A DNA stretch of 64,000 nucleotides from the NCBI RefSeq assembly GCF_002571385.2, contig NW_019217860.1:638856-702855 (forward strand). Reading direction: 5' to 3'. The notes beneath the pieces are model-generated. The model had not been told where the DNA came from, made no database searches, and was given only the letters and a program-made list of their open reading frames with translations. Positions 7,301-54,234 of the stretch are shown piece after piece (the stretch's first letter is position 1; every line of letters begins with the position of its first letter). The DNA comes from Stylophora pistillata (Eukaryota). Both the position numbers and the translations under genes were made by a program.

Positions 7301-10300
7301 CTGATTGGTCGAGAGGGTGTCGCAAATTTTATGGACCAACCAGAGATCTTTTGTCACGTGCTCTTTTCTTCGCTTGAAGCAAGCTGGACGTATTTACTTC
7401 GGTTAGTTACTCCTTCTGATTTATCTCTTTCTTTATCTCTCTGATTAGTCAATTTTTTTTTTACTTGTTTTTGTCGCTTAACCAAATTCAGTGGAAATAC
7501 TTTAATAGAAAAAGGTTTTTCAAATCTAATTTGCAACATGATTTATACTTCTGTTACGAATAGAAAAGCATTTCGGTCAAATAGAAAGCTTTTAAAACTC
7601 TCTTCTAATGTACCGATGGACTAACGAAAGTTGTCTGCAATGAAAAGCATACCAAAATGTGGCGATCTGATTGGTGCGAGACACATACTTTAATGCGGCG
7701 ATCTGATTGGTACGAGATACATACCCTAGTGTGGCGATCTGATTGGTTGGAGATACATTCCCTAATGTCGTGACATGATTGGTGCGAGATACACACCCTA
7801 ATGCGGCGATCTGATTGGTGCATGATACATACCCATGTGACAATCTGATTGGCGCTAGATACCTACTCTAATGCGGCGATCTGATTGGTGCGAGATACAC
7901 ACCCTAATGTGGCGATCTGATTGGTTCGAGATAGTTACCCTAAGGTGGTGACCTGATTGGTTCAAGATACACAACCTGATGCGGAAATCTGATTGGTGCG
8001 AAATACATACCCTAATGCGACGATCTGAGTGGTGCCAGATACATACCCTAATGCGGCGATCTGATCGGTGCAAGATACATACCCTGATGTGGGATCTGAT
8101 CGGTGCAAGATACATACCACTCGATACACTAACATAAAGTTATTTTTATTAAAAAAATAATAATTCCGAAAGAAGGAAAACTTACGTCTAGTTTTCTTCT
8201 CTTCTTTCCTCCTTGTGGCGAGTATTCTCTCAAGCCGTGAAATAAACTGGTCAAGTACATGATGATCAACTTTTTATCTGGCTTATCCACATCAATATCT
8301 TAAAAAAAAAAAAAGTAAGGACAAACATGAATCAAATAAGTTTTACTTAAAAACCAAACATTTATTAAGCTGGCCATAAGTTCGAAATTATTCCAAAGAC
8401 AGAGGTTACTCGCAGTTTTTTGCATATGAAACAATCAAAATAGATGTTGGCGTTTGCGTCCCTTGGTTTGGAGTTATCGAACTGTTGGAACTAAGGAATT
8501 ACAACTTATCTCAACAATTTTGATCTCAAAACGAGTTGCTTCGATGCATTCATTACAATATGAACGAGATTTGGGCTAGACAAAAAAAATATATTCACTG
8601 TTCTCTGTTTAAGAATGGATTAAAATGTGGCCTTCGACAAACACACTGAAATCAATTATCATAGGCGACAACACAGACAATTCACCACAGAAATTTCTTA
8701 GTTATCAAATCCTAAAGGTACGGAAAAGGAAAAACCGTGCTTTAATTCGCGAGTACCGACATTTTATTAACTTTCTTCATTCTCTGCAAACTAAAATAGG
8801 TGATTCAATTAAAAATGCTTCATCCATGACATTTTTTGAGGAAATATCACCATGTGAATTGAAAACAATTTGCGTTGTCACTAACTGATGAGAGTGTTTG
8901 CTTGTAAATTAGTCAGTGGAAAATGTCTTTAATATTTTTTTCTAGTTGGCAATTTTTTCAAATAAGAAATCAGAAAATTCTAGTACAGTAGTCTTTCTTT
9001 AACCTTGAGATGCATGGAGAGTTTTTCTGGTATACATTATTTTCTTCTTAATGGACGTTCCAATTTATTTATTTTGTTTTTGATCAAAATGTCGCCTAAT
9101 TTTTGTCCCTGATGCACTCTCACAGGTAATTAGGCCTTAAACAGGAAACCAGCATTTCAATAAAAGTTTGGAAAGATAGCCGCACCTTGAAATGAGGATG
9201 ACATACATAAGATCATAAAATTCGAGGTCAATAAATATTCAGTTGGCAAAAAACCAAATCAAATCGCACTGAAGAGACGTTTAGATTGCAGAAGAAGCTT
9301 AAAAGATCTCAAGACCTGCCTCTGACTGAGAAAAAGTAGGTTGCTTCGTATTTTTATTTTATTAGCAATTTTTGTTGTATCAAGTGAGAAAATCTCTCTA
9401 ATATACTTAAAATGTCTAGCTGAAAATCGAGATGTAAATCACAAGCTGACATATGCATGAGTACCGTGAAGGAAGAACTGTCGCACATTAAGTGTAGTTG
9501 TTCTCCAATTCCAAATCGAAATGTTCTGATAGTATTGCCCGCACACTTTTGACGAACATGTACACTTAAATGAAGCGTATAAAGTTTCAAAGTTAAAAAA
9601 AGAACCTGACAGCTAAGAAGGCTTAGAATGTGTTTCATGCGCTAGGACTTAATGATGCGTTTTACTTAAAAAGAATTAAATCGTAATCATGAACACAGAA
9701 ATCTTTAGAGGCGTTGCAGTTTATGAAAAGGATCGACTTTGGATGTGTTCCCTCAAAACGCGCAAATTAAGATAGCAAAATTTATAATAGAGTTTCTCAT
9801 TTAGAATCGATAGAATTGAAATTGGGTCAAAACAGAAAAAACAGGGATATTTATAAAAATGTTGAATTAACTCACCTGCTGGGTCAAGCAACTTTGGAAC
9901 TGAAAACTCGTCATTCGCTACGTTAAACGCGTGATCGAGGTTCGTTTTGTTGTCATTTTTTAAAAGGCTCTCAAAACGAAACAGTTCCGGCCTGGAAAAA
10001 GAGAAAAAGAAAGAAAAAGTTAGGGGAAAAGGGGTTTTTCTAAGAAACAGATAGATAAAGCATACTTAGAGTTGTCTCAAAAGATTGGATCGCTTTAATT
10101 AGTAAGGGGCTTTCTAGCACTACATGTAATCAGATACAATGTATATATGAAGTTCATATATTTTGAACTGCGGTATTAGATACGTATGATGCACGATCCT
10201 CGCAGTAGAGAGCGCTATTTATGCAATAGCGAAAATCAGACCTGAAAAAAATCAGGCCTGTACGGGATTCGAACCACTGACCTCTGCGATACTAGTGCAG

Positions 10301-13300
10301 CGCTCTACCAATTGAGCTAACAAGCCAACTGGGAGCAGGCCGTTGAGTTGATTCGTAAAAAACCCGTGACGATAAATCAGATACAATGTATATGTGAAGT
10401 TCATATATTTTGAACTGCAGTATTAGATACGTATAATGCACGATCCTCGTAGTAGAGAGCGCTATTTATGCAGTAGCGAAAATCAGACCTGAAAAAAATC
10501 AGGCCTGTACGGGATTCGAACCACTGACCTCTGCGATACTAGTGCAGCGCTCTACCAATTGAGCTAACAAGCCAACTGGGAGCAGGCCGTTGAGTTGATT
10601 CGTAAAAAACCCGTGACGATAAATCAGATACAATGTATATGTGAAGTTCATATATTTTGAACTGCAGTATTAGATACGTATAATGCACGATCCTCGTAGT
10701 AGAGAGCGCTATTTATGCAGTAGCGAAAATCAGACCTGAAAAAAATCAGGCCTGTACGGGATTCGAACCACTGACCTCTGCGATACTAGTGCAGCGCTCT
10801 ACCAATTGAGCTAACAAGCCAACTGGGAGCAGGCCGTTGAGTTGATTCGTAAAAAACCCGTGANGCTGCACTAGTATCGCAGAGGTCAGTGGTTCGAATC
10901 CCGTACAGGCCTGATTTTTTTCAGGTCTGATTTTCGCTACTGCATAAATAGCGCTCTCTACTACGAGGATCGTGCATTATACGTATCTAATACTGCAGTT
11001 CAAAATATATGAACTTCACATATACATTGTATCTGATTTATCATCACGGGTTTTTTACGAATCAACTCAACGGCCTGCTCCCAGTTGGCTTGTTAGCTCA
11101 ATTGGTAGAGCGCTGCACTAGTATCGCAGAGGTCAGTGGTTCGAATCCCGTACAGGCCTGATTTTTTTTAAGGTGTGATTTTCGCTATTGCATAACTAGC
11201 GCTCTCTACTGCGAGGATCGTGCATCATACGTAACTACATGTAATGGTAATAAAGAAATTTTGGTGGAAGACAGAACCAGGGGAAATCCTATCCTTAAGA
11301 TTAGCCTTTCCGCTATTCGATATCAATTTTCCCTTTTTTTTTTTTTTTTCAACTTCTCTTTGAGTATTTGGTAATAAAATAAGAAGAGAGAAAAACGCAG
11401 AGAAAGATAACACCATGTGGCGGGGTGATAGTACGCATTCCTAGTAAAGTAGTGCGGCGGGGTTAGGAGCCAAATACTATTCCCAGGCTTCGTGCGCCAT
11501 TTGAAATCAAGATGGCGGTCTCCATTAAAACCGCACAAAAGAAAATTGACTAAAACAAATTCTCAACGGGGCCATAGATATAAAAAATAACTGAAATAAA
11601 ATTACTTCATAGAAATGACACAGATTACTTACTTGTGAGAATGGATGATGGCGTTGAAAGCCAAACCGTCTCTCCAACTTGTTGTGAAGTCTTTCAATTT
11701 AACGGAATCCTCGTACCTTAAAGGAATTTTTAGAAATCCAAACTCATCAGACAAGTAAAGACGATACATAATGATATTCTACCTTAGAAAAATAGTAAAA
11801 ACTAACACCTAGATATCTGAACTATCAAAATAAGAAAAAAATTCAGAAAAGAATATAGTGTATACACTGTAACGAATCGAGTCTCAGTTGGCGATAATAT
11901 ATACCGCTACATTTTGGTCTCGTTGGTCACTTGGCGAGATTTTATTTGCTTTGACTGTATCCCTTTGACCTTGAACTCGGCCTTTGACGTTTCACCTTGG
12001 CTTATCAAATGCACATCATTTTAGGCCTCACCCTTCAAGTGATGTCTGACACCAAGAAAGCAGTTTCTTCTCGACTTGAAAATCTTTGACGCCGGTATCC
12101 CCAGCGTCATCACCAGTAATGACACCTTGCACCTGACAGAAATTGAGAAATATCAGAGGTCCCTAAATGTTAGTTTTGAAACGCTATTTATTTCCTTTGT
12201 ACCTTAGATTATTGCTTAAACACCGACTGTTTACGCTTAGTTAACGTTTATCTACGTCACGGTTTATTTTAGTCGATTACTGTAATTGGTGTGAAATTGT
12301 TACGCAATTTATGTCAGTCACTCGCTTCGGGTGTCTAAGAATTCCAAACTAGGTGTACATTTGTGACACCTTGCAAGTTACGGAGTTGCAGTTGGTACGA
12401 ACTAGTTTTTTCTTTTTCACGGGTTACCCTTCGAATAAAAGTCGAAGGGGAGAAACGAGAAACCGCAACTTACAGTAAGGATCCAAAAGACGAAGTCAGT
12501 ACGATAATAACTCAACTCTTCTGTGTCTGGTGGGTTTGGAAACTTTACAGAGTCCAGTAATTTATAAAGAATGAAAGACAAAATTTCACTCGCCTGGGAT
12601 TAAGAAAGACAGGTAAACCCAGGGTTACATAGTGTACCTGGAATCGTAGAATAATACTCCATATAAGCCCAAGAATAGTCGTGCTCTTTCCGTCGACGAT
12701 GTCGTAATTGCTGATCCCAACAAGCTTGACCTAAAAAATCATTTTCAGAAAAATGTGGTTATATTAAAAAAGTGCAGTCTTCCCAATGAAAACGAGTTTT
12801 GATTGTGCGATGATAAAAAAGGAAATCAATTTCACGTCGAAAGGTTTGCGCTTACACATACCCTGGTCTGCTTAAGAAAGCAAAAGTTGTGGGTATCACA
12901 CAAACGACCATTAATAAGCTAAAAGTACGGAATCATCACCACCAACCACAGTATAAAGACCAACATTTGAAAATATATTTAAGGGTAGAAAATGGCCAAG
13001 AAAAAAAAGCCTGAACAACACATTAAAAGATACAATGTCTGATGTCTTATTCAGTGCATTCATTACGAGCGTGGAAATTTATGCGTCGATCAATTCGAAA
13101 CTTCAACATCCCCTCCCTGGGCAACCCCTTTGGGATGGAAGAGGGTCAAATGTCCGTGGACTGCCTTGGATGGAATGTTGAAGCTTCGAACTGATCGGTG
13201 CATCAGTTGCAAAAATGCGTACTTACCCTGTTTTTTTCCAACACTTTAAGTGCTGTGGTCACATTAGTGAGTTTATGAACACGCATTCGGCCTTTCTCTC

Positions 13301-15383
13301 TTTTCTGTTGAAAAAAAAAAAAAAAACGTTTTTTGGGGCGTTATAACTAGCTTACTTTAGTGGTAGACAAGAAAGTCTGGCAATTATTTTGTAAAGATGC
13401 TTTTGACATTGCCGATCCTAGCAGTGTGCAGGACGCGTATCAAATATGATCTTCGTAATGAGCCTTGCTCACCATAGAGTCTCTGTGGGTCAGCGGTAGA
13501 GCATCGGAGCGCGGGATCCGAAGGTCTGAGGTTCGAATCCTCATGGGAACTCAGAAATGTTTTCACTGTCCCACGCTCGTGACAAGACGGAAAACATCTT
13601 TGTATCCGGCAATTATTGTAAGTCATAAGAAGAGTTTGTAAATTATAAGTAAAAAACAAGTAATTCGCAAACTCTTCCGCTGCCCTTACAACTGAGATTT
13701 TGTTCCGAGGCCTGTGGTGTTAGAAATGAATAAAAAAAGTTCTGAAGCCTCCTTCGCAGCTGTCACACTCAACGCATTCTTACCCTACAGGCGTGACGTA
13801 GCCAAAAAAAGGCTGCGAAACCAGGTGACTTAGAGTTTATCGAATCCCAGTTAACTAATAATATCTAATCGTAAATCTAGTACACACGGATATGCGGGCA
13901 TTCATTGGTGAAGAATACCAGTATATTTTGCTATAATCAGCTCTCGGAAGGTGAAAGAAGGTTAATTAGTTTATAGAACCGCTAAGATCAGCCAGTAAAG
14001 ACCATGTGCCTTACAGTCCCGTTTCAGCTTACTAGCGCGGTCCTCAGACAGCAATGCAATGTCATAAACTATTTGCAACCCTAGATAAAGACAGGCATTA
14101 AGTAAGCAACAGCACTTATCAACAACAAAAAAGGCTTAAACAATATCAACAACAGCAAAACATAACAGAAAATCAGCGCGGCAAAGTTTTCTTTAGCCAA
14201 CTGTTATGTACATTCATCGCGTAACGAAACATTGGTACAACGAGACTTACCAAAGTTGTTCCCAAGAGGACCTCCAACAGAGAAAGGAAAACATGTCCAT
14301 CTCGAACTTCCTCGATAAGATCCGTCACCTCTAAAGGTGGTACGGCCTGCACAACGTTTGAGAAAAAGCAAACATCATTGTTCGTCACTGAAACTGTTTT
14401 CAAAACAACGATGACAACCAAGGTAGTGATGGAATGCGAGAACATACGTATGAAGAAGAACAAAAAATGCGCATGTATGTATGCACCGACACCAAAAGAT
14501 GAAGAAAGAGTCGTGAAATTTTTTCGCACGAAAGCCGCCAGGGAGCTAAGCGAAAATCAAAATGGCGGCGACTGGGTCACAAATTCGTTTCCTTCGGTGG
14601 TTTGAGCTTACCATTGCAAGCTTGGAGTTGATCCACTTTCGGAATGTCTTCTTATGAATTTCCTCTCTCTGTCCTTAATATTGAGAAAAGAAAAGTATGT
14701 ATATCAAACAAAGCCACGTGACCAATCACGTGAACCATCCATTGTACATTTGACCAGCTCTTTCTCTTGTAGCGTTCAAGCACATCTTTAAAAGACGTCA
14801 CTCACTGTTCCCTAAAGTTTGATGTTCTCCCTTGTATGTTCCCGACACCGCCTTTACAGGAGATCATGAGAATTTGCGGCTAGATAAACTTTAAGTCGTC
14901 GATCACAATTCAGTTTAACTGCTCATCTAATTTCTGAATTGCACATCATAACGTCGGGAGAATAAAGGAAGTGATATCCAACTAAAGAAATTCTTGATTG
15001 CTTTAAAACAATTTCTCTTAATCAGCACCTTAAGAAACGCATACAGAACAGTATGGAGAACACGAATGTAAAGGATCGATAGATGCTATACAAAATTGAA
15101 ATTGCCATATGGTGTTACTTCTTCCTAAACCACAAATCGCCATCTTTGCTATGCTGGTTTACGATATAAATACATTACTGTTATTGAAATCCCTTATTTA
15201 ACAACTGCAAAATAAATAACCCTTAAAAGTAACTTGGTAATTTGGAAGTCTACGAAATTACAAATAGTGAAAAAAATTTAGTGAACGGAATTGCTCGAAG
15301 ACAAACGATTTCATCAGTAAAGAATTAAACTGAATATTACCTCGTCTTATGCAAACCATTTCATCACCAACAGATGCGATCAT
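1..15383 (-). CDS. DMD: Dystrophin/utrophin-like protein, 5' portion (CH1-CH2 actin-binding domain + at least 4 spectrin repeats); continues beyond left edge
   Basis: GT-AG exons joining in frame: 15383-15341, 14673-14612, 14346-14251, 13304-13227, 12730-12638, 12132-12032, 11716-11633, 9991-9876, 8298-8186, 7040-6900, 6581-6400, 6019-5878, 5421-5240, 4740-4617, 3884-3790, 3372-3207 (or its copy 2301-2136), 1568-1387, 732-558, 471-290, 67-<1. Motifs: QREEIHKKTFRKWIN, DGHVFLSLLEVL, DIVDGKSTTILGLIWSIILRFQ, EKKLLSWCQ, DFTTSWRDGLAFNAIIHSH, LLDPADIDVDKPDKKLIIMYLTSLF, then spectrin-type helices (LLHDRWEKL). Early exon sizes 62/96/78/93 resemble vertebrate DMD exons 2-5 (recalled). The C-terminal WW/ZZ region is outside the window, so orthology is not proven. 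Confidence 0.88.
1067..1296 (+). mobile_element. tRNA-derived SINE in dystrophin intron
   Basis: A box (GTGGCCGAGTGA) and B box (GGTTCAAGTCC) in a tRNA-like head, non-tRNA body, followed directly by a (TTA)n tail. Confidence 0.8.
1297..1380. repeat. (TTA)n microsatellite / SINE tail
   Basis: About 28 TTA/ATA triplets; source of the poly-Asn end of ORF 1290..1532. Confidence 0.95.
2082..3667. repeat. Near-identical ~515-bp direct duplication flanking an N gap (2082-2596 vs 3153-3667), containing one dystrophin exon
   Basis: Offset 1071 bp; identical 66-aa ORFs at 2115..2315 and 3186..3386; about two visible SNPs; gap 2597-3093. Confidence 0.9.
7165..7330. repeat. Dispersed repeat (related copy at ~27385-27660)
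   Basis: Shared blocks cagccaatcag...accaagtcgcg...ttttggctttgcat.tgattgg...ggaccaa in both loci. Confidence 0.6.
7648..8117. repeat. 36-bp minisatellite, ~13 copies
   Basis: Unit ~GATCTGATTGGTGCGAGATACATACCCTAATGCGGC, starts at 7664, 7700, 7736...; gives 12-aa periodic spurious ORFs. Confidence 0.92.
10131..11233. mobile_element. Tandem + inverted array of 247-bp tRNA-like-containing unit with 12-bp TSD
   Basis: Units start 10131, 10378, 10625; orientation flips at N 10864; ACTACATGTAAT at 10119-10130 and 11234-11245. Confidence 0.88.
11087..11159 (+). tRNA. tRNA-Thr(AGT)-like cloverleaf inside the repeat unit, probably not a functional tRNA (other copies: - strand 10254-10326, 10501-10573, 10748-10820, 36162-36234, 36410-36482; + strand 36592-36664, 36840-36912)
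   Basis: GGCTTGT TA GCTC AATTGGTA GAGC G CTGCA CTAGTAT CGCAG AGGTC AGTGG TTCGAAT CCCGT ACAGGCC T: 7-bp acceptor stem, D arm, A/B boxes; two mismatches in T stem and one in anticodon stem. Confidence 0.55.
13081..13203. mobile_element. Small MITE-like element with ~30-bp terminal inverted repeats
   Basis: atgcgtcgatcaattcgaaacttcaacatcc ... ggaatgttgaagcttcgaactgatcggtgcat. Confidence 0.7.
13405..13605 (+). mobile_element. Second family of tRNA-containing dispersed repeat (decayed copies ~32605-32750, ~39560-39690)
   Basis: Internal tRNA-like segment ctgtgggtcagcggtagagcatcggagcgcgggatccgaaggtctgaggttcgaatcctcatggg followed by shared tail ccacgctcgtgacaagac. Confidence 0.65.
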
Positions 15384-23430: not shown

Positions 23431-26400
23431 ATGGAGGATAAAGAACAAATGGTAGATGGAGACGATGATGCTATGGAATCAGAACTGGAGGGGAGTGAAA
23501 AGCCTGAGGGAGGGTGGGGTTGGGTGGTTTGTTGTGGTACCTTCAGCGTCAACTTTATAGTGTTCGGTATTCATAACTCATTTGGTGTGGTGTACGAGTA
23601 CCTGGTAGATGAACATCACATGGGGGAAGCTGAGACAGGTAAGGATGATAACCCAGTGGGTAAACCTGACTGAGAGTTCTTTACTGTAAAACAGTCGCAG
23701 ATTTTGACTTTTGACCTTGAGCCAAGCAGGCACGTAGCGTGGTCATTTTTTCAAGTACACACAGGTACATATGATCTAGAAACCTAAGTAAACTGAGCGA
23801 AAAATACTGCATTCTTTATTTCTTGTTTGAAATAGTTGTGTGAATACAAGCAAAGAACAAAGCGTCTTGCCCTTATTTTGAGCAAACTTGGCGCAAACAC
23901 AACATTTTTTTCAAATTTTTCTGGTCACTTCAAGTACGCACATGTGTATATATATATGCGTAGAGGACACTATGCACCTGCCAAGAAAGGGGGCAGGGGT
24001 TGTGTGTGTACACCTGCAGGCTTTCTTTTCTTTCTTTTGCAATTATTATTTCACCCAAAATAAGGGGGGTCTTGGCCCCCCCCCCCCAGGTGCCTCCCCT
24101 AGATCTGCCAATGTAAATTACACACTGAGTTTTACCCATGTTCATTTGAGTGCCTTAGTTAAATCAAAGATAAAAAAAGGAATGTTGCATAATTTGTAGT
24201 ACAGATTACAAAGACAACATTAGGGAGATCTCTAGTTTTTTTCCATGCATGTGGAGTTGCTTGAAATGAGTGATGCAGAATGAGTCAGTCCCTTATCATT
24301 GTCCAATTTCATCCTTAATTTCTACTTGTAATGTACATTGAAATGGCTCGTGTTGTGAATCATTAGCAGCATTAGACAACATTTTAGGGCACTTTTTTAT
24401 TAAGATATTTTCACTCACAAATATTACAACAAAGTATCTGTTCTTTCTTTCCTCATAGCTTGGGTTGGTGCAATGGCTGGTTCCCTTAACTTCTTGTGTG
24501 GTCCACTGACAAGTATTCTTTGTGATCGCTTTGGATTTCGTCGAGTAGCATTTGTTGGGGCCCTTCTATCTGTGACTGGACTTTTTCTTACGTCACTTGT
24601 GACTAGCTTGCATTACATGTACCTCACTTATGGACTTCTTTGGGGGGTAGGGTCCAGTCTTTCCTTTGTACCTTCCATTGTGATGTTAGGTGAATACTTT
24701 GATAAAAGACTGGCACTAGCCAATGGATTAGGTACAAGCGGGAGTGGAGTGGGTTCATTGGTAGCCTCACCTGCGATTAACTACTTACTGCGGGTCCTTG
24801 GATGGAGTAACTCTCTGCGCATACTCAGTGGGGTTGCAGCATTTCTTGTTGTGGCATGCTTCCTCTATAAACCGGTAAAAACAAGACGGCGTGAAAGAGC
24901 CGTGACAAAACAGTGCAGCCAGTTGTGTGACATTTCAATTTGGAGGAACCGGCCTTACGTAGCCTGGGTACTAACAGTAGCGTTATTCCAGTTCGGATAT
25001 CCAGTCCCTTTCGTCCATTTGGTAAGTCAGGAGACTTTCATACTCTGTTTGTGGTGTAGTGCCATGGGAATAATGAAAAGGATGTACTAGTAGTACTGAG
25101 GTCGCGTGAAGATTCGTTAGCCGTGTGCTCGTAACGTCGAGGAAATCATCGCTTTCACGCAGAAAAGAAAAACAGCAAAAATAAAGCGAAACATTACGAA
25201 AAAGTAGAAAATTCAGCAAAGTTTTATTTGGTTTTCTTCAGTTCTCTTTGAATCCTCCAGTCAGCCCAATGGATAGTGCGCTGGACTGTTGTGTAGGAGG
25301 TCGAGGGTTCGAGTCCCGGCCGGACCAACACTCAAGGTTTTAAAATAATTGAGAAGAATTTGCTACCTTTCTATAAATTCAAGAAATGGTTAGATATTCT
25401 AGTCTTCTCGGATAGGGACGAATAAATGGAGGTCCCTTCTCCTGCAGGGTTGGGGGCATTAGACGTTAATTTCCCACACACGAGATAACTGTGTGATGGA
25501 TATCCTCCCCTGGGGTGGAATGGGTGGGTTTCCTGGGCCCGCAGCAATTGGCGCAAGCTGTTGCGGTGTCCCTGCCTGTCGGCGAATCTAATAAATTAGA
25601 TTAAAACGTGACAAGACCTTTTAAAATGTATCTTGAAGTGACAAAAGCAAATTTAATGTGCAAGTTACATGAACAAAGCAAAATCAGTAGTAATGTGAAA
25701 AGAAAACCATTAAAAAACATTTTAAGTTTGTAGAACTTATTTATGGCTCATAATTTGTTTTAAAAAAAAAAGTCTGTGGAAGCGCAGTCTATTTAAGTAA
25801 GTTCGGCATTTGCTTGGAGGCTTGTGTTTATCAATATTTTGCTTTCAATTACAGCACTTTTTGAGGGAGCAGGGATGGCGCAGTGGTGAGAGCACTCGTC
25901 TCCTACCACTGTGGCCCTGGTTCGATTCCTGGACCTGGCGTGACATGTGGGTTGAGTTTGTATTTGGTTCTCGTCCTTGCTCCGAGGGTTTTTCTCCGGG
26001 TCCTCCGGTTTTCCTCCCTCCTCAGGGGACAAGAAGAGCCACCCAGTGGAATGTCCATTGCTAAATTATTATTTATTTATTTACTTATGCTAAAAGAGAA
26101 GCTTTCTTTAGTAATGTCATAAAGTTATGTTCATTTGTATCCCTCTCGTCAGGTGAAATACGCCGATGACCTTGGTATCCCGCCTTCCAAAGGAGCATGG
26201 CTGGTCGGATTCCTTTCCATCATGTCTACTGTGGGGCGTGTGATTTTCGGAAAGATCTGTGAACTGCGATGGGTCAACAAGGTTTATGTTTACCAGTTTT
26301 CAGTGTTTACCATAGGACTTAGCACGATGATCTGTCCAATCACAGAGGGGTATGCGGGTCTCGTGACCTACTCTCTTGTGTTTGGTTTTTTCGATGGATG

Positions 26401-29918: not shown

Positions 29919-32900
29919 ATGAAAAGTGAAAAACAAGCAGATGGTGGACTTAGGGGGAAATCGACAAGTCGAGACGGCGGCTACGGATGGGTAGTTTGCT
30001 GTGGGACTTTCATTGTAAATTTTGTGGTATTCGGAATTCACAACTCATTTGGTGTTGTGTATGTTAACCTACTCGATGATCTACAACTTGGTGAGATGCA
30101 AACAGGTGAGCAAACAGTCCGTACTGGTACGTAGTTAGTGATTTCAGACTATACTTTGATCTATACGGTTACTCAAGTGTCAAAGTAATTGTGCTTGTAC
30201 TAGACAAAATCACTGTAAACACAAGGGATTTTAAAACTAACTTATTAAATATGTTCAATTCCAGTCTTGAACAGAGAAGTAGCTCTGCTTCATCGTTAAT
30301 GGAATAGATTTAAGTGCACGCGTTAGGATGAAACACGCATTAACCTTAATTGAAACGATCTAACTGTTGTTCACTTGCTAATTTTAGAAGAATACAAAAG
30401 GATTAATCGAACCTGAGAGAGTACATCGAAAATGATACATGTCGCAGTGCTATCTTTCAAAGAGAACTAACTGTATCTCTAGCTTCGCTTGAAGTTGATT
30501 AATTCTCTATTAAAACTGACTAGTTGTAAATGACAATAAGCTAAGTGAGTGAAATTGATATCTTGACTGACACGATACATATGAATTGATGAATTGAAAC
30601 ATTGAACTATTTCCCTTCGAGCTGAAGTTTCATTTTCGTTTTTCACTCAATAATTTCTCGCCAGGAATTTACACCTGAAAAAGGTGGGTGTCCGCACATG
30701 AATCGATTATTATGGTCATCACGAGTTTGGACTAAACCTTTGAAAAATAAACAAATGCTGGTCTCCTGATGAAAGCACATCAATTTCTTTCCCCGTGATT
30801 TTTTCTGACTTGAATCAAAACAACAAACATCTTCTTGCCTGAAATTTTCAATACTTACTTCTATATAACGGGCAAGTGATTACTTCCAAATTTCTATTCC
30901 GTCAGAAATAAGGTTGCTAATTTGCTGTTTATCACGTGTGGCCGACCTGTCAACTATAGCACAGCAATGGAGATGTCAAGTACAGATTAATTATGGAAGA
31001 CTTCTGATAAAGGGTCCCAATGGGGTGATGGTTTTTACGGCTAACGGTTAAAATTTTGGCCAATCGACGACTAACGGCTAATATCTTTCCGTGGCAGTCA
31101 CCAAAAAAAATTTTAGTAGTTATTTTTTTAACCACTAGCGGTTACAATTTTTGAACTGTTACGCCTAATGGCTAAATTTTTTTGGCCATGTTACTGCTAT
31201 CGATTAACAGAGACCTTCCAGATGCTAAGTCTAAGCACGCCCTTGATTAGTTTAGCATCGTAACATCAGGGATGCACAGCAAGTTCTGCCTGGCATGGTT
31301 AATGTCTGCAGAAGTTTTAAAGTCACAGGTTATCGCCTAAATTTTGGTTTACAATGACTAATGGGACAACTGTAGAATTTGTGAACAGGGTTTTATAGAG
31401 AGCGCATTGGCGTGTTTCAGAATCTACAAGATAGGCGTCATCGACCAAGCGTGAGGTCCACAAAACAAGTGTTAACAAAAACAATAACAACGGCAGCTTG
31501 ACAGAGCATGCTTACTCTTCTAAAGGTTTAACCAAAAGAACATAATGTTGTATTATTTTCCCTTGGACTTACCTAAAATCCCGAAAAAGTAAAGATCGAT
31601 ATGCCCAAAAATCGAGAAACTCGTCCCTTCTTTTAATGAAAAATATAGTTTCTTGCTTGTAAAGCAATGCAAATAGATAATTTCCTTTGCGCTAACAAAC
31701 AAATCACCGTCCAAAAGATTTCGAAGCATGGGGAGTAAAGCTCACTTCGTCTTGAAGAAGAAGGGATTATCATCATGCTTTTTAGTGCCGTTTGTACTCG
31801 GAGGGAGTGGAAGTTGTAGAATAGGCGGTTAAACTTTTCATTCTTAGGGGTTTCAAATAATATCAAAAAATAAGTAGAACAGTTAAGAGAGGCGACAAAA
31901 ACATCGACTAAGGGACTTTCGTTTGATTCTTGATTCTATCTTGCCAGGATACATTGTACACGCCGAATCATTGTCTGTTTTTAAGAGTAGACTTAAAATT
32001 TATTTGAATATTTATTGAATATTTATTGAATCTGTAGCCATTATATTTTATCTTTTGTATGTTTTTAGTCAGGGAAAATATTTTTATACAGGGCTAACCT
32101 CACGATTTTCCCTTATGAGGATGTATTTTTAATATTTGCGTTGTAGCTTCCTGAATAAATGTTATGTAATGTTATGTTATGTTATGTTACACCATATTCT
32201 CGGATCTAAAAAATGAAATGTACAAGAAATGGAAACCTGACAGTGATGAGGAGACTTAAATATTCAAATCTTGTATGAGAAAGGATGATGATGATACCCT
32301 TGGGTGGGCGCCTTGCATGGGTCTTTGTGTCCCGTGCGCGCCTTTCTCTTTTAGCCTGGCTTTTATTAATTTCGCATAGTTATTCTACTTATTCCTTCCT
32401 ATCTTGTAAATAGTTTTATTCCATTTATTGCCCAGTAAAGATTTAAAGAATTTTCAGGATAAGAAGGTGAAGATTTTACAGGCAAGGATACATAGCGTTC
32501 GTATTGAAATGCTTCTGAAGTGTGAGACAGTGGATGATGGGAAGCGTAAGGTGGAATTTGATGAAATCTGCTACTGTGGCCAGACTAACTCATGCACTTA
32601 CACCGATATTGGGTATTGAAGGGTTCTCTTTGGCTCATTGGAAAGCATCCGAGCGCGAAATCCGAATGTCTGGGATCGATTCAGCGTGGGGGAATTCAGA
32701 TATTTTCCACTGCTCCACACTTGTGACAAAAATAATAAAATCTTTATACACTGAGATCATTGTTTTATTTCTTTTCACAGCGTCGATCGGTGCCATGGCT
32801 ATGGGGTTGAACTTCTTCTTTGGTCCTATATCAAGTGCACTGTGTGATCGTTTTGGATGTCGCGTTGTGTCCTTCGCTGGCGCGTTGCTGTCCGTATCAG

Positions 32901-34603
32901 GGTTGTTCCTAACTTCGTTCATACAAGAAGTTCATAAAATGTATGTGACCTACGGACTTGTATGGGGAGTGGGTTCTAGTTTCTCCTTCGTGTCGTCCAT
33001 CGTTGTCCTTGGTGAGTACTTTAATAAAAGACTGGCGCTCGCCAATGGGATTGCAACATCCGGGAGTGGCGTAGGCTCTCTTGTTGCCGGGCCGGTCATA
33101 AATTACCTACTGGGATCTGTTGGATGGAAAAACTCCATGCGCATTTTGAGTGCGTTTGCTGGACTGTTGTGGTTTGCGGCTATGATCTTTAAGCCAAAGA
33201 AAAATCTTCAGTCTACTGGGCAAAGAAGAGAACGTACCAAGTTATTTGATACATCAATATGGAAGAATAAAGCGTATGTTTTGTGGGTCACTACTGTAGC
33301 CGTGTTTCAATTTGGTTATCTGATTCCATTTATTCACCTGGTAAGTTGTATCATTATTTTTTTATACTCTTTTTTCCTCTCGTTCCTGACTGGTTAGTGA
33401 CAAATGCATAAATAGGTTGTGGACTGCCATTCACGATTTCTTTCTTGCAATCTCGCTAAAAGGGTTAGTATTTAAAGAAAAGTTACCAATGTTGATCTAC
33501 AGAATATACTTCGAAGAACATTAAACTTGGTCTTTGTGTCATGATAATTTAATAAAATAATAAATTCAAAGAAAACACGAGCGTTTTCTAGACAATTTTT
33601 TTTATTAGCCACCGTTAGGTAGAGAATTTCTAAAGCAGACACAACTCGCGTTGACCCCTGAAGAATTAAGGGCTAACACTTGAAACGCAAGCTTTAGAAA
33701 CTCTTTACGGTGGCAAATTCACATTATCAACTCAGTTGATTAAACCAAAATAATTTGGAAATTCCCTCCCCCGACGCAGCACCACAGTTTTGTCAGAAAC
33801 TTACCGCCTTATTCGTCTTGTTATTCTCTGCAGGTGAAGTATGCCGAAGATTTAGGAGTACCAAAATCTAAAGGCGCATGGCTAATTGGCTTTCTGTCAA
33901 TTACCTCAACACTTGGACGAGTGGTATTCGGCAAAATTTCCGACCTGAAATTTGTCAACAGGCTCTACATGTACCAATTTTCGATATTTTCCATTGGATT
34001 GACCACCCTCTTGTGCCCTCTGGCCAAAAACTATGCAGGACTTGTGAGTTATACTTTGATATTCGGATTTTTTGACGGATGTTTTGTTGGCCAAGTTGCA
34101 GTGATTACAGCTGATGTGGTCGGACACGATAAACTTTCTCAAGCAGTGGGAAACATGTTTGGAACTCTGGCGATACCAATGAGTCTTGGACCTCCGCTCG
34201 CAGGTAATCAGGTTTATGTAAATTTTTAATTAAATGTCGAGTGAAAACGGTCGACTAACCTAAGGTTTCAACTTTGTTTTTAGGTTGGCTGCATGAAGCA
34301 TTCGGCACCTATGATAAAGCATTTTACATTGCCGGTTCTGTGGCGATATTTTCTTCTCTCTTGATTTTTGGTGTAAACTATATGATTCGAAAGCAGTTTA
34401 CAGAAAGGGAAATTGAGGAGCAGTTGGGATTAAAAAGCGACACTTCGCTGAGTGTTTCTGAAGCTGAAACAGCTTCTGACTCTGCTTACAAAGATACAGA
34501 ATCAAAGCCGATGCTGGAAGAGGAAGAGTACGTGGCCGTCAATAAATTTTGCAAGCTGCACTGTGCGTTAAGAACAAGCAAGGCACTTCTTGTGGTCGAC
34601 TCT
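29919..34603 (+). CDS. SLC16 monocarboxylate transporter family member (MCT8/MCT10-like), copy 2; stop codon lost in N gap
   Basis: Exons 29919-30105, 32781-33340, 33834-34203, 34284->34603; same intron positions and phases as copy 1 (exon 3 is 370 nt in both); RDGGYGWVV, YFNKRLALANGIATSGSGVG, GPPLAGWLHEAFGTY. Confidence 0.92.
31950..32189 (+). mobile_element. Probable LINE 3' UTR remnant with (TGTTA)n tail
   Basis: AATAAA followed directly by five or six TGTTA-like repeats at 32160-32189; left boundary approximate. Confidence 0.45.
33655..33815 (+). mobile_element. Decayed copy of hammerhead-bearing Penelope-type non-autonomous repeat (others ~38995-39200, 42210-42357, ~43590-43670)
   Basis: agggctaacacttgaaacgcaagctt...tttacggtggcaaattcacattatcaactcagttgat...cccccgacgcagcaccacagttt homologous to 49260-49495. 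Confidence 0.7.
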
Positions 34604-36014: not shown

Positions 36015-36089
36015 TGTTGGCTGCTTTCGATCTCCCAATACGTTTTGTGCACAAATCTCTAGATAGTTATCACCAACATTATTGTTATT

Positions 36090-37031
36090 CGTATGATGCA
36101 CGATCCTTCGCAGTAGATAGCGCTATTTATGCAATAGCGAAAATCAGACCTGAAAAAAATCAGGCCTGTACGGGATTCGAACCACTGACCTCTGCGATAC
36201 TAGTGCAGCGCTCTACCAATTGAGCTAACAAGCCAACTGGGAGCAGGCCGTTAAGTTGATTCGTAATAAACCCGTGATGATAAATCAGATACAATGAATA
36301 TATGAAGTTCATATATTTTGAACTGCGGTATTAAATACGTATGATGCACGATCCTTCGCAGTAGATAGCGCTATTTATGCAATAGCGAAAATCAGACCTG
36401 AAAAAAATCAGGCCTGTACGGGATTCGAACCACTGACCTCTGCGATACTAGTGCAGCGCTCTACCAATTGAGCTAACAAGCCAACTGGGAGCAGGCCGTT
36501 AAGTTGATTCGTAATAAACCCGTGATGATAAATCAGATACAATGAATATATGAAGTTTATTACGAATCAACTTAACGGCCTGCTCCCAGTTGGCTTGTTA
36601 GCTCAATTGGTAGAGCGCTGCACTAGTATCGCAGAGGTCAGTGGTTCGAATCCCGTACAGGCCTGATTTTGTTCAGGTCTGATTTTCGCTATTGCATAAA
36701 TAGCGCTATCTACTGCGAAGGATCGTGCATCATACGTATTTAATACCGCAGTTCAAAATATATGAACTTCATATATTCATTGTATCTGATTTATCATCAC
36801 GGGTTTATTACGAATCAACTTAACGGCCTGCTCCCAGTTGGCTTGTTAGCTCAATTGGTAGAGCGCTGCACTAGTATCGCAGAGGTCAGTGGTTCGAATC
36901 CCGTACAGGCCTGATTTTTTTCAAGTCTGATTTTCGCTATTGCATAAATAGCGCTATCTACTGCGAAGGATCGTGCATCATACGTATTTAATACCGCAGT
37001 TCAAAATATATGAACTTCATATATTCATTGT
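36090..37031. mobile_element. Second tandem + inverted array of the tRNA-like-containing unit (248 bp) with 12-bp TSD
   Basis: Units start 36090, 36338; inversion junction at 36555-36557 (GTT microhomology, no N); ATTATTGTTATT at 36078-36089 and 37032-37043. Confidence 0.88.
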
Positions 37032-38146
37032 ATTATTGTTATTATTTTTATTAACATCATTATTTTCATCATTATTTTTTGCACGTTGCAAAAATCGTGA
37101 AAGGGTTACGAAGCGGGTCGTACGCACGTGACAAGTCTTGCGTGAGAAGCCCGGTGGAACTTTGTCATAGCACCAAACCGTTACGGCAGGTGGCCAGATT
37201 CAGGAAAAAGAAAAACTAAAATTACAGCTGTCATATCAAACCCTGCATGTGTCAGTGGCTGTCTTTTGTCTGATCAACGCAAGTGTAATATTGCTAAGTC
37301 AATGTGAAGGAACTAAGGAAGCTTTTAATAAATCGACTCAGGAAGGTAAACAAATGAAATTAAGAGGTCCAACAGCAAATGAAACTGCGAATTGGAAATG
37401 CTTCCGGCAAAGAAAATTGATCTTATGTCCGAAAATCAGCGAATGATAGGCCGCTCAGAATTTGGTGTATTGATGATACACAGTTGAAGTGTTAACGACG
37501 CAAATTGTCCACGAACTGTTGGAGAAAACGATATAGGTAACAAATTCGTGCACAGAGGAAATTGTGTACCACCTTCCTTAGTAGGAAATACAACAGAAAA
37601 AAAAAAATAAACATAGAAGCGAAGACGAAAGTTTATGTAAATCCTTTTTCTGATGAAATTGGTTTTCAGTACATTTTTTGATTAATTCGTGTTTATTTAA
37701 AAACTTGCTTGACAACGAATTTTGTTGACACATTTGCATTTCTTAACCTTAGGCGTTTATAGGTTTTTAACAGGCGGGTTAACGCACTGTGATTGTAACT
37801 TTACGTTGTCTATCGTGGTAGAAAGGGGAAAAGCATGTCGTTTGTCGTTCACATGTGACTGTTCGCACGAGTTTTTTTGCTTGACACCTACATAGGGAAA
37901 ATTTTCGTAGAATATTTACTCAGTGTCAACACAATCGTACAAACGCTGACGATAACCTGAGCTGGTGTGGTCAGGGGCCTTGTAAAGCAAGACTTCGTTA
38001 TCAGTTTCTTTTAAGTAAGACTACTTGTGGTTTGAAAGATTCTACAAATCGCCAAACTGGGTTGTTCGTCGTCGAACGCAGCAAAACCAGCGGCTGACCG
38101 CAACGCACAAACACGTGATGACGAAAACGACAACAACCAAGCCGCC

Positions 38147-48303: not shown

Positions 48304-49259
48304 TAAATACTTCGTGTAGGTTGACAGAATTGACTAATTCACACCAGGCAATACGACACAGATCTAATCCACCCGCCACTCAAGTCATAACGTGCAATAT
48401 GCACCTTGAATATAACACTTATTCATATTTGAATTACTTTGACGCGAAAATGCACATATACTACTGCTCCGGGCGCTATGGTTCTTAAATAAAGACTGAT
48501 GGCCTTCAAGCGCCCACAACGTTTTCTCGTCCGAAGGGGATGCCTGAAACGTTTGGGCCAGTGGCAATGATCGTGCTCTGATAGCAGGAATATGGCGCAA
48601 ACACGAGAATGGCATGGTGCATTAGGTAACGACGAACGATAAAAGATGGGATAAAAGCCGCAATCCCGTCGTCCCCTTTAAGCTTTACGTGCCACTCAAT
48701 CATCTTAATTCTCTATCGCACCCTTAGAGCTGAGAAGTAAGCCAAAGCTGTGGACCAACATTAAACGTTTTGGAATTGCTGTAGCAAAACATTCTCTTTT
48801 TGAAAGACTGGTGATCAGTATATTATAATGGAACATTCATTACAAACCCCCACGTTACATTTGTAAGTACTATTAAATAGGAATTCCTTTAAGTCCTGGA
48901 GTTTCGAAACCTCGTGAGCAATACATGCGTTCCCAGTTGAATAAAAGCTTGATCATTTGTGATGGTTTGTCTACCCAGTCCCCTCCTTATCGGGCGGATA
49001 CCGCGGATCAAACCCTCTCTGCCTTTCCAGACATTCCAATCATTCATGGTATGTTTCTAAGATTATCGATAACTTTCCGACATTCGACTTTGGCCAGTAG
49101 GGTCATTCGTCGTAGCCCAGTATGGCAGTGCGTCAACATTGCATCCAAACAAGAGCTCGCTTGTGCTTCGATATTATGGCCCGGCGTATCTTGTCCTTCG
49201 CACTAGTTTGGGTGTCAATCTGTCTGGGATATTTTCATACAGCTCTTCTTTATTGGATA

Positions 49260-49495
49260 AAGGCTGATAGTTTCTAAAGAAACTGTTTGGGACTGCGTCG
49301 GTGGGGGTAACGAAATAATTTGGTTATATCGACAAAGTCGAAGTGGTAAATTGGCCACCGTAACGATTACAAAAGCTGACGTTTCGATTCGTCGCGATTC
49401 GCTCCGACGAAGGGCTAACGCTCGAAACGTCAGCTTTTGTAATCGTTACGGTGGCCAATTTACCACTTCAACTTTGTTGATATATCCAAATTACC
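49260..49495. mobile_element. Head-to-head inverted Penelope-type non-autonomous insert with 13-bp TSD
   Basis: ~72-bp inverted arms 49316-49387 / 49422-49493; TCTTTATTGGATA at 49247-49259 and 49496-49508. Confidence 0.82.
49401..49434 (+). ncRNA. Minimal type I hammerhead ribozyme-like motif (core variant)
   Basis: GCT-CCGACGA-A-GGGC TAAC GCTC-GAAA-CGTC-AGC: helix I GCT/AGC, helix II hairpin, palindromic helix III ACGT; CUGA changed to CCGA here, while the copy at 42325-42358 (-) keeps CTGATGA but has GTAA. Confidence 0.65.
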
Positions 49496-51138
49496 TCTTT
49501 ATTGGATATTGCACGGCGCAAACCATTCGTCGCGTTTGATTTCGAGCCGTATAGTCGGTGTCCATAATGATGAATCATAAAGAATTACTGATTCCACAAT
49601 GGACATGAAAAAAAACCTGTTTGACCACACGAAACCTAAATTATTGAAGAAAATTGTAAATATGTTGACATACCGTTGGCGAATTATTCTGTTAATAGAT
49701 AAGCTCTGTGGAAACTTAACCAGCTATTGATAAAATAAATCTTTCGGTCGAAGGCCAAAAGTACAGAGTCTTTTATGGTACACTTTGAGATATCGAGGAT
49801 TGGGAAAGTCATGCACCAACCCAGAGTAACCTCTTTCACATTTGCAGTCGGTCTTTGTGATGTCGCACAAGGGAGACGAGTAACCTTGAAGGATGTGAAT
49901 TAAAAATACTCCCTGGCTTGGAGTTTGGTCTCAGATGTTCACAAGGCAAAGCAACATCACGGATTGAAGACCGTTCACTGAGTCTGATTAATTAACATTC
50001 AACCATGCCTCTACCCTTTACCCAAAGTATATCCGTGCTTCACCAAACTATGACGGCCGTTAGTTGGAGTCTGATTGTAAGGAGAGAGGGGTAGGAAGGG
50101 GATATTTGGTATTAGCTTCCTGATATCTGTCTACGTGGGAAACAATGACTTAATTTCCTTAATTGGGAAATTATGCAATTTGAGGGACACCAACATTGAT
50201 TCCGCCATGTATTCATGCAGAGAAAGACAAAGGTCAATAAACAAAGAAAAAGGGTTAAAGAAAAGTAACTTTTTATCATAAGAAAAGCCCAAAAACGGCC
50301 CTGTAAAACTTGTCAAAGTTAAAATTTTACGTATATCTACTAGAAAATTGAATTTTTTCGTACATCAAGAAAAAAAGCGTAATATATAATTCTGTTAACT
50401 TTGACCTTGTTATATTGCTTGAAATCTGCTACCTTTGCCAACGCGAGTTACAAATGAGAGCAGTAACTCTACCATGTGTTATGTCGAACAAAGTTTTTGT
50501 TTTAAAAAAATGAAAGGTACTGAATATGATTATCGTAGGTCCACAACAACCTTTATCTGAACAGTAATGCGGCTGCTTCAGATTTTTGGCACAGGCTTGT
50601 CACTTCCAAATAAAAATGTCCTAAATGCTAAATCAGCAAGAGTTCAACCCAAAAATCACGACTTAAATTGGACTTAGTCTGAGACTCGCCTTTGTGTACA
50701 TCGAGTAACCGCTATAAGCAGTCAGCAGAGAAAAAAAACATAAATTCCGTCCGTTCGCTGCCCAGTCTATATATCTAGGCAATTCGCTCAGCAAAATGAT
50801 TGAAACTGAATCAAAAAGTGATCAGATGACTGAAAAACGATAACGAGAAAGTACATGTAATGAGTCCATGAAATATTGACAGGAAATTATCTCAAATCGC
50901 TTTGTTCTTAGTAACGGAATGATTACATCGTCATCCTACAATATGCGAACAGTTTGAGGAAAGCTAGTCCGACTTGACACGGAATAAAGCAATCCCATAG
51001 AACCTTGCAAACGTCTTCTACCGATAGCTAAAAGAATTGTGTAATCATTAGGAAGTACGAAGTAGTAAAAGGAACGTAACGCAGTTCTATCTTCTCTTAA
51101 TTTGTCGTTTTGTTGCACGTGAGCTGAAACAAAGGTTC

Positions 51139-53808: not shown

Positions 53809-54234
53809 GATTAACGCCGGGCTACAATTGAATAAATTGAAAACCCTTATAAGAAACCTTATGATTACCCATCTCCATGACAACTTGCACTATATGGACA
53901 CGCGTAATTATCAATCAGCCAAGCAGAGACAAGCACTAGCTTCCGCTTGCTTGAGTGACGGACGTTTGATAATCGTGCATATCAAACAACTTCTACGACT
54001 GGTTCGTCAAAGATTGTCAGACTAAAGAACAAAAATGAACCTGTCAATCACGTGAGGTTATCTGGATATCTCATAGTCAATGAATTTTAATAAAAAATAA
54101 TGAAATAAATAAATTTATCAAACCGGCAATGCCTTGTCCTTACTGTGACGTTATCTCAGATTTCATTAAAAACCTGAGGTCAAGGAAGACAACAAACTGT
54201 GAACTGAAGGACTTGTGCACTTATAGACAACTTT

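Follow-up and report, generated by a model that had tools for sequence, protein, structure and literature searches.

How does a short repeat with a tRNA-like module inside it come to stand in two tandem arrays, joined head to head and bracketed by a target-site duplication (TSD)? The question is raised by a block at positions 10119-11245 of a 64,000-nt stretch of DNA from the coral Stylophora pistillata (assembly GCF_002571385.2, contig NW_019217860.1, positions 638,856 to 702,855 of the forward strand), which is the window analysed here and to which all positions below refer. We propose that the 247-bp unit of this block defines a hammerhead-free, tRNA-bearing tandem element that is probably dependent on Penelope-like elements (PLEs), a cousin of animal retrozymes and not an ordinary short interspersed element (SINE). 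To our minds, it is fairly probable that this non-autonomous element is integrated by PLE-type double target-primed reverse transcription.

The bracketed block consists of about 2.98 minus-strand units, one N and about 1.51 plus-strand units (Table 1). Tandem Repeats Finder calls a single array at 10128-10863 (period 247, 3.0 copies, 98% matches), and BLAST with one unit, numbered in tRNA sense from the first base of the tRNA-like module, divides the minus arm (10128-10863) into unit pieces 1-199, 1-247, 1-247 and 205-247, and the plus arm (10865-11237) into pieces 26-247 and 1-150. The exact repeat ACTACATGTAAT brackets both arms; as a chance 12-mer common to two 30-nt zones it has an expectation of about 5e-5. 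Array, unit pieces and exact repeat bear out an earlier note on this DNA, made from the letters alone, that had seen three tandem units, an inversion and about 1.5 more units within a 12-bp TSD, and the tRNA-Thr(AGT)-like cloverleaf it had placed in each unit is called four times by ARAGORN and Rfam. Since these calls lie on the minus strand in arm 1 and on the plus strand in arm 2, the tRNA-sense 3' ends point outward on both arms; inspection of the sequence at either end type found no poly-A, A-rich, microsatellite or simple-repeat tail, again as the note had described, and its three hairpins (CCTGA-A6-TCAGG, CGCTATT-TATGC-AATAGCG and GTTCA-TATATTT-TGAAC) are all found in the predicted fold. 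The outer end of arm 1 is of a long type (Y, with a tail) at about unit 196 and shares 3 nt of microhomology with the TSD, while that of arm 2 is of a short, tail-less type (X) at about unit 146. Each flank occurs only once in the genome, which leaves no haplotig with an empty site for this insertion; the syntenic loci of two contigs from related corals (L059, L060) are without the element, but their intergenic DNA is too diverged to yield a precise empty site.

Table 1. Coordinates of the two insertions of the 247-bp family in the window and of their parts
Feature	Position	Strand	Basis or remark
Left 12-bp TSD copy	10119-10130	.	exact match to 11234-11245, ACTACATGTAAT
Arm 1, ~2.98 units, tRNA sense on minus	10131-10863	-	Tandem Repeats Finder, BLAST
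T7 run, Pol III terminator-like	10245-10251	-	two bases past tRNA-like 3' end
tRNA-Thr(AGT)-like module	10254-10326	-	ARAGORN, Rfam, 48.9 bits
tRNA-Thr(AGT)-like module	10501-10573	-	ARAGORN, Rfam, 48.9 bits
tRNA-Thr(AGT)-like module	10748-10820	-	ARAGORN, Rfam, 48.9 bits
Single N at inversion joint, assembly ambiguity	10864	.	sequence
Arm 2, ~1.5 units, begins within tRNA-like module at unit 26	10865-11233	+	BLAST
tRNA-Thr(AGT)-like module	11087-11159	+	ARAGORN, Rfam, 48.9 bits
Right 12-bp TSD copy	11234-11245	.	exact match to 10119-10130, ACTACATGTAAT
Left TSD, second insertion	36078-36089	.	exact 12-bp repeat ATTATTGTTATT
Arm with short (X) outer end, second insertion	36090-36560	-	BLAST
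Arm with long (Y) outer end, second insertion	36555-37031	+	BLAST
Right TSD, second insertion	37032-37043	.	exact repeat ATTATTGTTATT

A second, independent member of the family (36078-37043) has two minus units followed by two plus units and an N-free joint at which the arms overlap by 6 bp. Searching the genome (397.6 Mb, 5513 contigs) with one unit gave at least 716 candidate loci, and 40 scored candidate places returned 134 matches of 87-100% identity, many of them in arrays of 2 to more than 10 units. These matches, together with the single-copy flanks, make this a mobile, multicopy family. Its members are tandem arrays of non-coding 247-bp units, 1.1 to more than 10 units long, with TSDs of 6-14 bp, and our account of insertion anatomy rests on 50 fetched loci in which every unit piece was mapped.

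In these mapped loci the outer (3') ends fall into two narrow zones, unit 143-147 (short) and unit 191-196 (long), while the inner (5') ends are scattered over the whole unit. Tabulating copies, as the earlier note had proposed, returned inverted arms, fixed outer ends and exact TSDs in 11 flank-anchored two-arm insertions (2 in the window, 9 in other contigs); the TSDs measure 7, 9, 9, 10, 10, 11, 12, 12, 12, 12 and 14 bp and are richer in A+T than the window (75% vs 61%, p=8e-4). A short end is paired with a long end in 13 of 14 two-arm insertions (binomial p=9e-4), which have a one-sided tail of 46-51 nt on the long-end arm. The order of a minus arm followed by a plus arm, with 3' ends outward, is seen in 15 loci, and single-arm insertions occur with either type of end.

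The two types of junction differ from each other. Over the first six target bases, long ends agree with the onward unit sequence at 33 of 66 positions, as against 19.4 expected when targets are permuted among loci (p=0.0005), and no long-end junction contains filler. For short ends the figure is 19/48 vs 16.5 expected (p=0.14), with 2-7 nt of filler at 3 of 11 junctions. At long ends, priming seems to have occurred by annealing to a template that extended beyond the junction; short ends have the look of a genuine nucleic-acid terminus, engaged or joined without homology. Both sites are alike in lying within one copy of a short direct repeat, in the 247-bp family as well as in a diverged one. 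Where the arms meet, they overlap by 1-24 bp in joints that are mostly non-palindromic, and they usually stop at different unit coordinates, which speaks for a template switch joining two cDNAs that were primed independently, and against simple snap-back. Snap-back self-priming as a general source of inverted arms was rejected on these differing inner ends, and for the second insertion in the window it is incompatible with the lengths of the arms.

The earlier note had reckoned with a mis-assembly. Relatives of a 50-codon pseudo-open reading frame (ORF) held by the unit, found in protein collections, pointed to contigs in other public assemblies; exact look-up of its 50 amino acids and exact-pattern scans of metagenome contigs gave no match. 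An N-free long-read contig (L061, 94-97% identity to the unit) has a long-end arm and a short-end arm within an 8-bp TSD, and a further long-read contig (L072, 97-98%) has a single arm of 1.6 units with a 6-bp TSD. In a related coral, a 398-kb contig (L062, about 80%) contains head-to-head arms with short- and long-type ends and a 12-bp TSD, and one locus present in at least 13 Tara metagenome scaffolds (L065-L071, 71-86%) shows a 2.5-unit tandem with an 11-bp TSD. Given these structures, the geometry cannot be put down to a single assembly, and the family is older than the species; rather than dissolving into mis-assembly, the geometry recurs in N-free loci and in long-read and metagenome assemblies. 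A 488-aa ORF adjoining the copy in the 398-kb contig has no domain match and seems unrelated.

PLE-type integration would account for this anatomy as follows. The unit is made up of a conserved leader, a decayed tRNA-derived RNA polymerase III (Pol III) module with a T7 terminator and a body of about 170 nt. Staggered nicks 7-14 bp apart in AT-rich DNA would expose two target 3'-OH ends, both of which would prime copying of a longer-than-unit, tRNA-sense RNA, be it a read-through multimer or a rolling-circle copy. For the long arm, the target end would anneal within unit 191-196 on a template running past this zone; the short arm would start or end about 50 nt upstream at a discrete terminus (143-147), without homology and sometimes with filler, which would account for the one-sided tail. 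The two cDNAs would then be joined at a variable internal point through a short-overlap template switch, and the product would be two tandem arms, head to head, with their 3' ends outward.

Published PLE insertions show strong 5' truncation, partial tandems and often an adjacent inverted, 5'-truncated copy; they carry a tail of 30-40 bp (31 bp in one case) at one end only, have TSDs of 8-10 bp, lie in AT-rich targets and often cause trouble in assembly (PMC8557442; PMC3846280). Since all of these features are found in the 247-bp family, we take Penelope-type integration to be its best reading, and in this sense the earlier note saw rightly when it spoke of a retro-type mobile element in many copies, not an ordinary SINE, that uses both nicked target strands in a Penelope-like geometry. 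The likeness includes solo or captured pseudo-LTRs (LTR, long terminal repeat) and non-autonomous PLE derivatives (MRC1/Chlamys; pseudo-LTR-flanked captured DNA in Adineta vaga), which likewise show 5' truncation, head-to-tail partial tandems, a neighbouring inverted and 5'-truncated copy placed head to head, and the tail at one end; their TSDs vary in length (about 8-13 bp), their targets are AT-rich and assemblies are chronically broken at them. Unlike in those insertions, the whole element here is a short repeated unit with a tRNA-derived Pol III module, and its tail is about 50 nt long. PLEs abound in the genome, which has at least 1590 candidate GIY-YIG sites, with open frames of up to 1306 aa in further GIY-YIG families; one family (L051-L058) encodes a zinc finger and a GIY-YIG C-terminus, with homologues that have RVT_1. 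A canonical, minimal hammerhead core lies some 80 nt before its 3' end, and its targets are (TA)n microsatellites. Most copies of that family are 5'-truncated to 0.5-1 kb and some form inverted pairs; an apparent long open frame in L053 is a run of N.

Several observations count against PLE-type integration. The tail of 46-51 nt exceeds the 30-40 nt reported for PLEs, and we did not find an autonomous PLE that has sequence in common with the unit: the comparison with autonomous Penelope 3' ends that the earlier note had suggested covers one family, whose 3' end is unrelated to the unit. Moreover, the outermost partial unit of an arm differs by 2-5% from its neighbour, whereas inner units within an arm are near-identical (0-2 differences per 247 nt), so that tandem length may partly be due to expansion after insertion or to assembly collapse, and interior unit numbers and variants derive from a gapped assembly.

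How far can array interiors be relied on? Many arrays of the family have N runs at their centre or edge, the N at 10864 probably being of the same kind, and because of this N at the inversion joint and of gaps at the same place in many other loci, the number of units per arm is untrustworthy. The TSD and the opposite orientation of the flank-anchored ends are independent of the interior assembly. In the block at 10119-11245, the inner units of both arms have 8 changes in common that occur in no other scored copy, and the outer units have the family consensus at those 8 sites; in-place homogenisation with arm-to-arm conversion, one heterogeneous template for both arms or assembly collapse would each give such a pattern. 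Unit counts at the time of insertion are uncertain, then, but end orientation and TSDs are not. The inverted arrays of this family themselves break assemblies.

What does the tRNA-like module contribute? In the copy at 10254-10326, the A and B boxes are intact, with mismatches in two of five T-stem pairs and in one anticodon-stem pair. The T7 run is repeated in every unit and kept in related families, and in a cross-family alignment (A1) the leader, which lies upstream of the module, the tRNA-like body and the T7 run are the best-conserved parts. The anticodon is AGT in the 247-bp family and GGT, with C33 and an intact T stem, in a related one; anticodon switch, C33 and mismatched stems show no constraint on decoding, and the module is not a decoding tRNA. 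What is conserved is a Pol III-type gene complete with terminator; most likely it acts as a self-contained Pol III/TFIIIC unit retained by the element, and it is not the signal that defines the element's ends. Within the S. pistillata genome, 2 of 15 shared variant sites lie inside the module, a trend only (p=0.13), and private changes are fewer there, a count confounded by the repeated units, so the cross-family alignment is the better evidence.

Neither of the two roles that the earlier note had offered for the tRNA fold has stood up. As a promoter for the whole unit it would fail because Pol III, meeting the T7 run, would stop about 10 nt past the module and be unable to make the rest. As a monomer-processing signal it is at odds with the fixed termini (143-147 and 191-196), which lie 70-120 nt past the tRNA 3' end and coincide with neither RNase P nor RNase Z sites, and with the inner ends, which show no enrichment at tRNA +1 or +74 (1 of about 45 at tRNA +1). 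The minimum-energy fold of the unit RNA, in which the leader pairs with the 3' half of the module and no cloverleaf forms, is stabler than shuffles (z = -4.05 and -3.64). The leader (unit ~205-247) is partly complementary to the T arm and the acceptor 3' strand (45-72), for instance at 36795-36912, where an extended hairpin is predicted; this modelled pairing could be a relic of a former inverted joint, or else an alternative fold that has a function. ARAGORN calls each unit tRNA-Thr(AGT), above the Rfam tRNA threshold, at 10254-11159, at 36162-36912 and genome-wide, which means that the family inflates tRNA counts in coral annotation; for the S. pistillata genome, automated annotation will list hundreds to thousands of spurious tRNA-Thr genes.

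Two further repeat families of the window touch on these questions. The first is a palindromic 236-bp insert at 49247-49508 with the 13-bp TSD TCTTTATTGGATA and an extension of about 50 nt on one arm only. It has at least 1670 candidate loci, among which long arms reach query position 162 and inverted arms stop at about 97-117, and Rfam found no hammerhead in it at E<=1, only spurious microRNA-hairpin matches. Its tail asymmetry is the same as that of the 247-bp family and we count it toward PLE-type integration. The second is an older tRNA-like family of about 165 bp (13440-13605), with a 39-nt leader before the tRNA-like part and at least 789 candidate loci of 83-87% identity, some copies of which have an adjacent inverted arm or 93-bp tandem sub-units (contig C176, for example). 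Its 3' end, TTGTATC, is also found at the long end of the 247-bp family, which hints at a common enzyme that may start at this motif, the match being one of a 7-mer only.

We consider a strict retrozyme cycle unlikely for the 247-bp family, although much recalls it. Unit RNA would be cut from array transcripts, circularised and rolling-circle reverse transcribed, and the processing role of the hammerhead would fall either to the tRNA-like fold or to a self-cleaving motif, so far unrecognised, located at the short-end site. Metazoan non-LTR retrozymes, which abound in corals and probably depend on PLEs, are non-coding units of 150-400 bp that occur as tandem dimers to large multimers, with low GC and TSDs of more than 4 bp (Cervera and de la Pena 2020; Li et al. 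2026 preprint). The 247-bp family agrees with this description in the size of its unit, its tandem arrays, its low GC, its coral host and the length of its TSDs (PMC7229834), and also in being built of small non-coding tandem units with TSDs and without LTR, primer-binding site or polypurine tract. In addition, the units of one arm are nearly identical, the fold of the unit RNA is stabler than those of shuffled versions (z about -4) and the short-end site, precise, free of homology and sometimes with filler, resembles a discrete nucleic-acid terminus; two N-free arrays (C137, C600) begin at unit 147-150, directly past that site, a weak hint that it is a cut site. Against such a cycle, an Rfam scan of 10000-11400 on both strands to E=10 found no hammerhead, twister, pistol, hatchet, HDV-like or other ribozyme family, and reading the sequence of the locus revealed no CUGANGA core on either strand. 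Unlike metazoan retrozymes, then, the unit lacks a type I hammerhead on both strands and contains a tRNA-like module with its own terminator, its 3' termini and 5' ends keep away from the tRNA processing sites, and some arrays (C12) interleave two subfamily variants, which is unlike a single rolling circle, though assembly chimerism could mimic it.

Could the element instead be an ordinary tRNA-derived SINE mobilised by a long interspersed element (LINE), its inversions made by twin priming and its tandems by later unequal exchange? Twin priming is known for L1, and inner units do look homogenised in place; the A and B boxes are intact, the TSDs are variable and AT-rich, and the 7-mer shared with the second tRNA-like family suggests that a 3' motif is recognised, in the manner of stringent LINE-SINE pairs. 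The family further resembles SINE2 elements in being short, non-coding and present in hundreds of copies with variable TSDs. All the same, we think this improbable. The 5' ends lie away from the tRNA start, and the conserved leader precedes a module that is internal to the unit; the T7 terminator directly past it leaves Pol III unable to make the body, and element ends are unrelated to Pol III start and stop. There is no poly-A, simple-repeat or other LINE-type tail, the rule of a one-sided tail is not a LINE feature, and nearly all copies are multi-unit, many of them inverted, including insertions of 1.1-2.5 units in other assemblies. As in L1 twin priming, both nicked strands would prime on RNA, the second internally via microhomology, and cDNA joints have short overlaps; unlike there, copying starts at two set positions separated by 50 nt, where L1 uses its poly-A end and an internal site chosen at random, and the template would be multimeric. 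A Pol III-derived module within a repeat is also known from the plant Cassandra TRIM (terminal-repeat retrotransposon in miniature), which, unlike the 247-bp element, is LTR-type with primer-binding site and polypurine tract, has integrase-type 5-bp TSDs and carries a 5S rRNA module in its LTRs. The likeness lies in a non-autonomous element with a conserved Pol III gene-derived module in its repeat and the capacity for long tandem arrays (PMC7215508).

There is a slim chance that the family is a hammerhead-free analogue of retrozymes. Array transcripts would be cut at about unit 146, by an unrecognised self-cleaving motif or a host RNase; the unit RNA would form a circle that a PLE without a ribozyme, for example a Naiad, copies as a rolling template, and the conserved tRNA module with its terminator would recruit Pol III/TFIIIC or tRNA-pathway enzymes that keep arrays expressed or RNA processed. 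If true, animals would have a further, new way of making small circular RNAs.

An origin at the DNA level, as a foldback transposon, reintegrated extrachromosomal tandem DNA, a palindromic tRNA-cluster rearrangement or an assembly artefact, is very unlikely and already largely refuted, for while inverted arms made of tandem subrepeats recall foldback elements and there is an N at the joint and gaps at many array centres, TSD length varies (6-14 bp), the two termini, set about 50 nt apart in the unit, do not form an inverted-repeat pair, the combination of fixed outer with variable inner ends is that of 5' truncation, the flanking DNA is unique and the same geometry is seen both in loci free of N and in independent assemblies from long reads and metagenomes.

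PLE-type integration matters beyond this locus since the transposition mechanism of PLEs is unsolved, their tandem and inverted inserts and one-sided tail being without a tested mechanism. The 247-bp family offers hundreds of short, alignable insertions with two statistically separable types of junction, annealing-primed and blunt or filler-joined, which constrains the models. If our reading is true, PLE parasitism would reach beyond hammerhead retrozymes to a tRNA-derived element, and the boundary between SINEs and retrozymes would be blurred. In the literature searched, whose coverage is incomplete and which leaves Repbase and Dfam outside, we found no description of a tRNA-bearing, PLE-dependent element.

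Elsewhere in the window, an intronless 914-aa ORF (51139-53883, minus strand) combines TPR repeats with a C-terminal CHAT protease domain (E=3.7e-57), and a 21-bp tandem repeat of 9 copies (53608-53796) lies at its 5' end. Paralogous first exons of MFS transporters are found at 24473-25090 and 32522-33397 (plus strand); their synteny is kept in the two coral contigs named above (L059, L060), and the closest named homologue of the pair is a monocarboxylate transporter 10-like protein of Montipora capricornis (77% identity). A 36-bp tandem repeat of 13 copies with 79% matches occupies 7648-8118.

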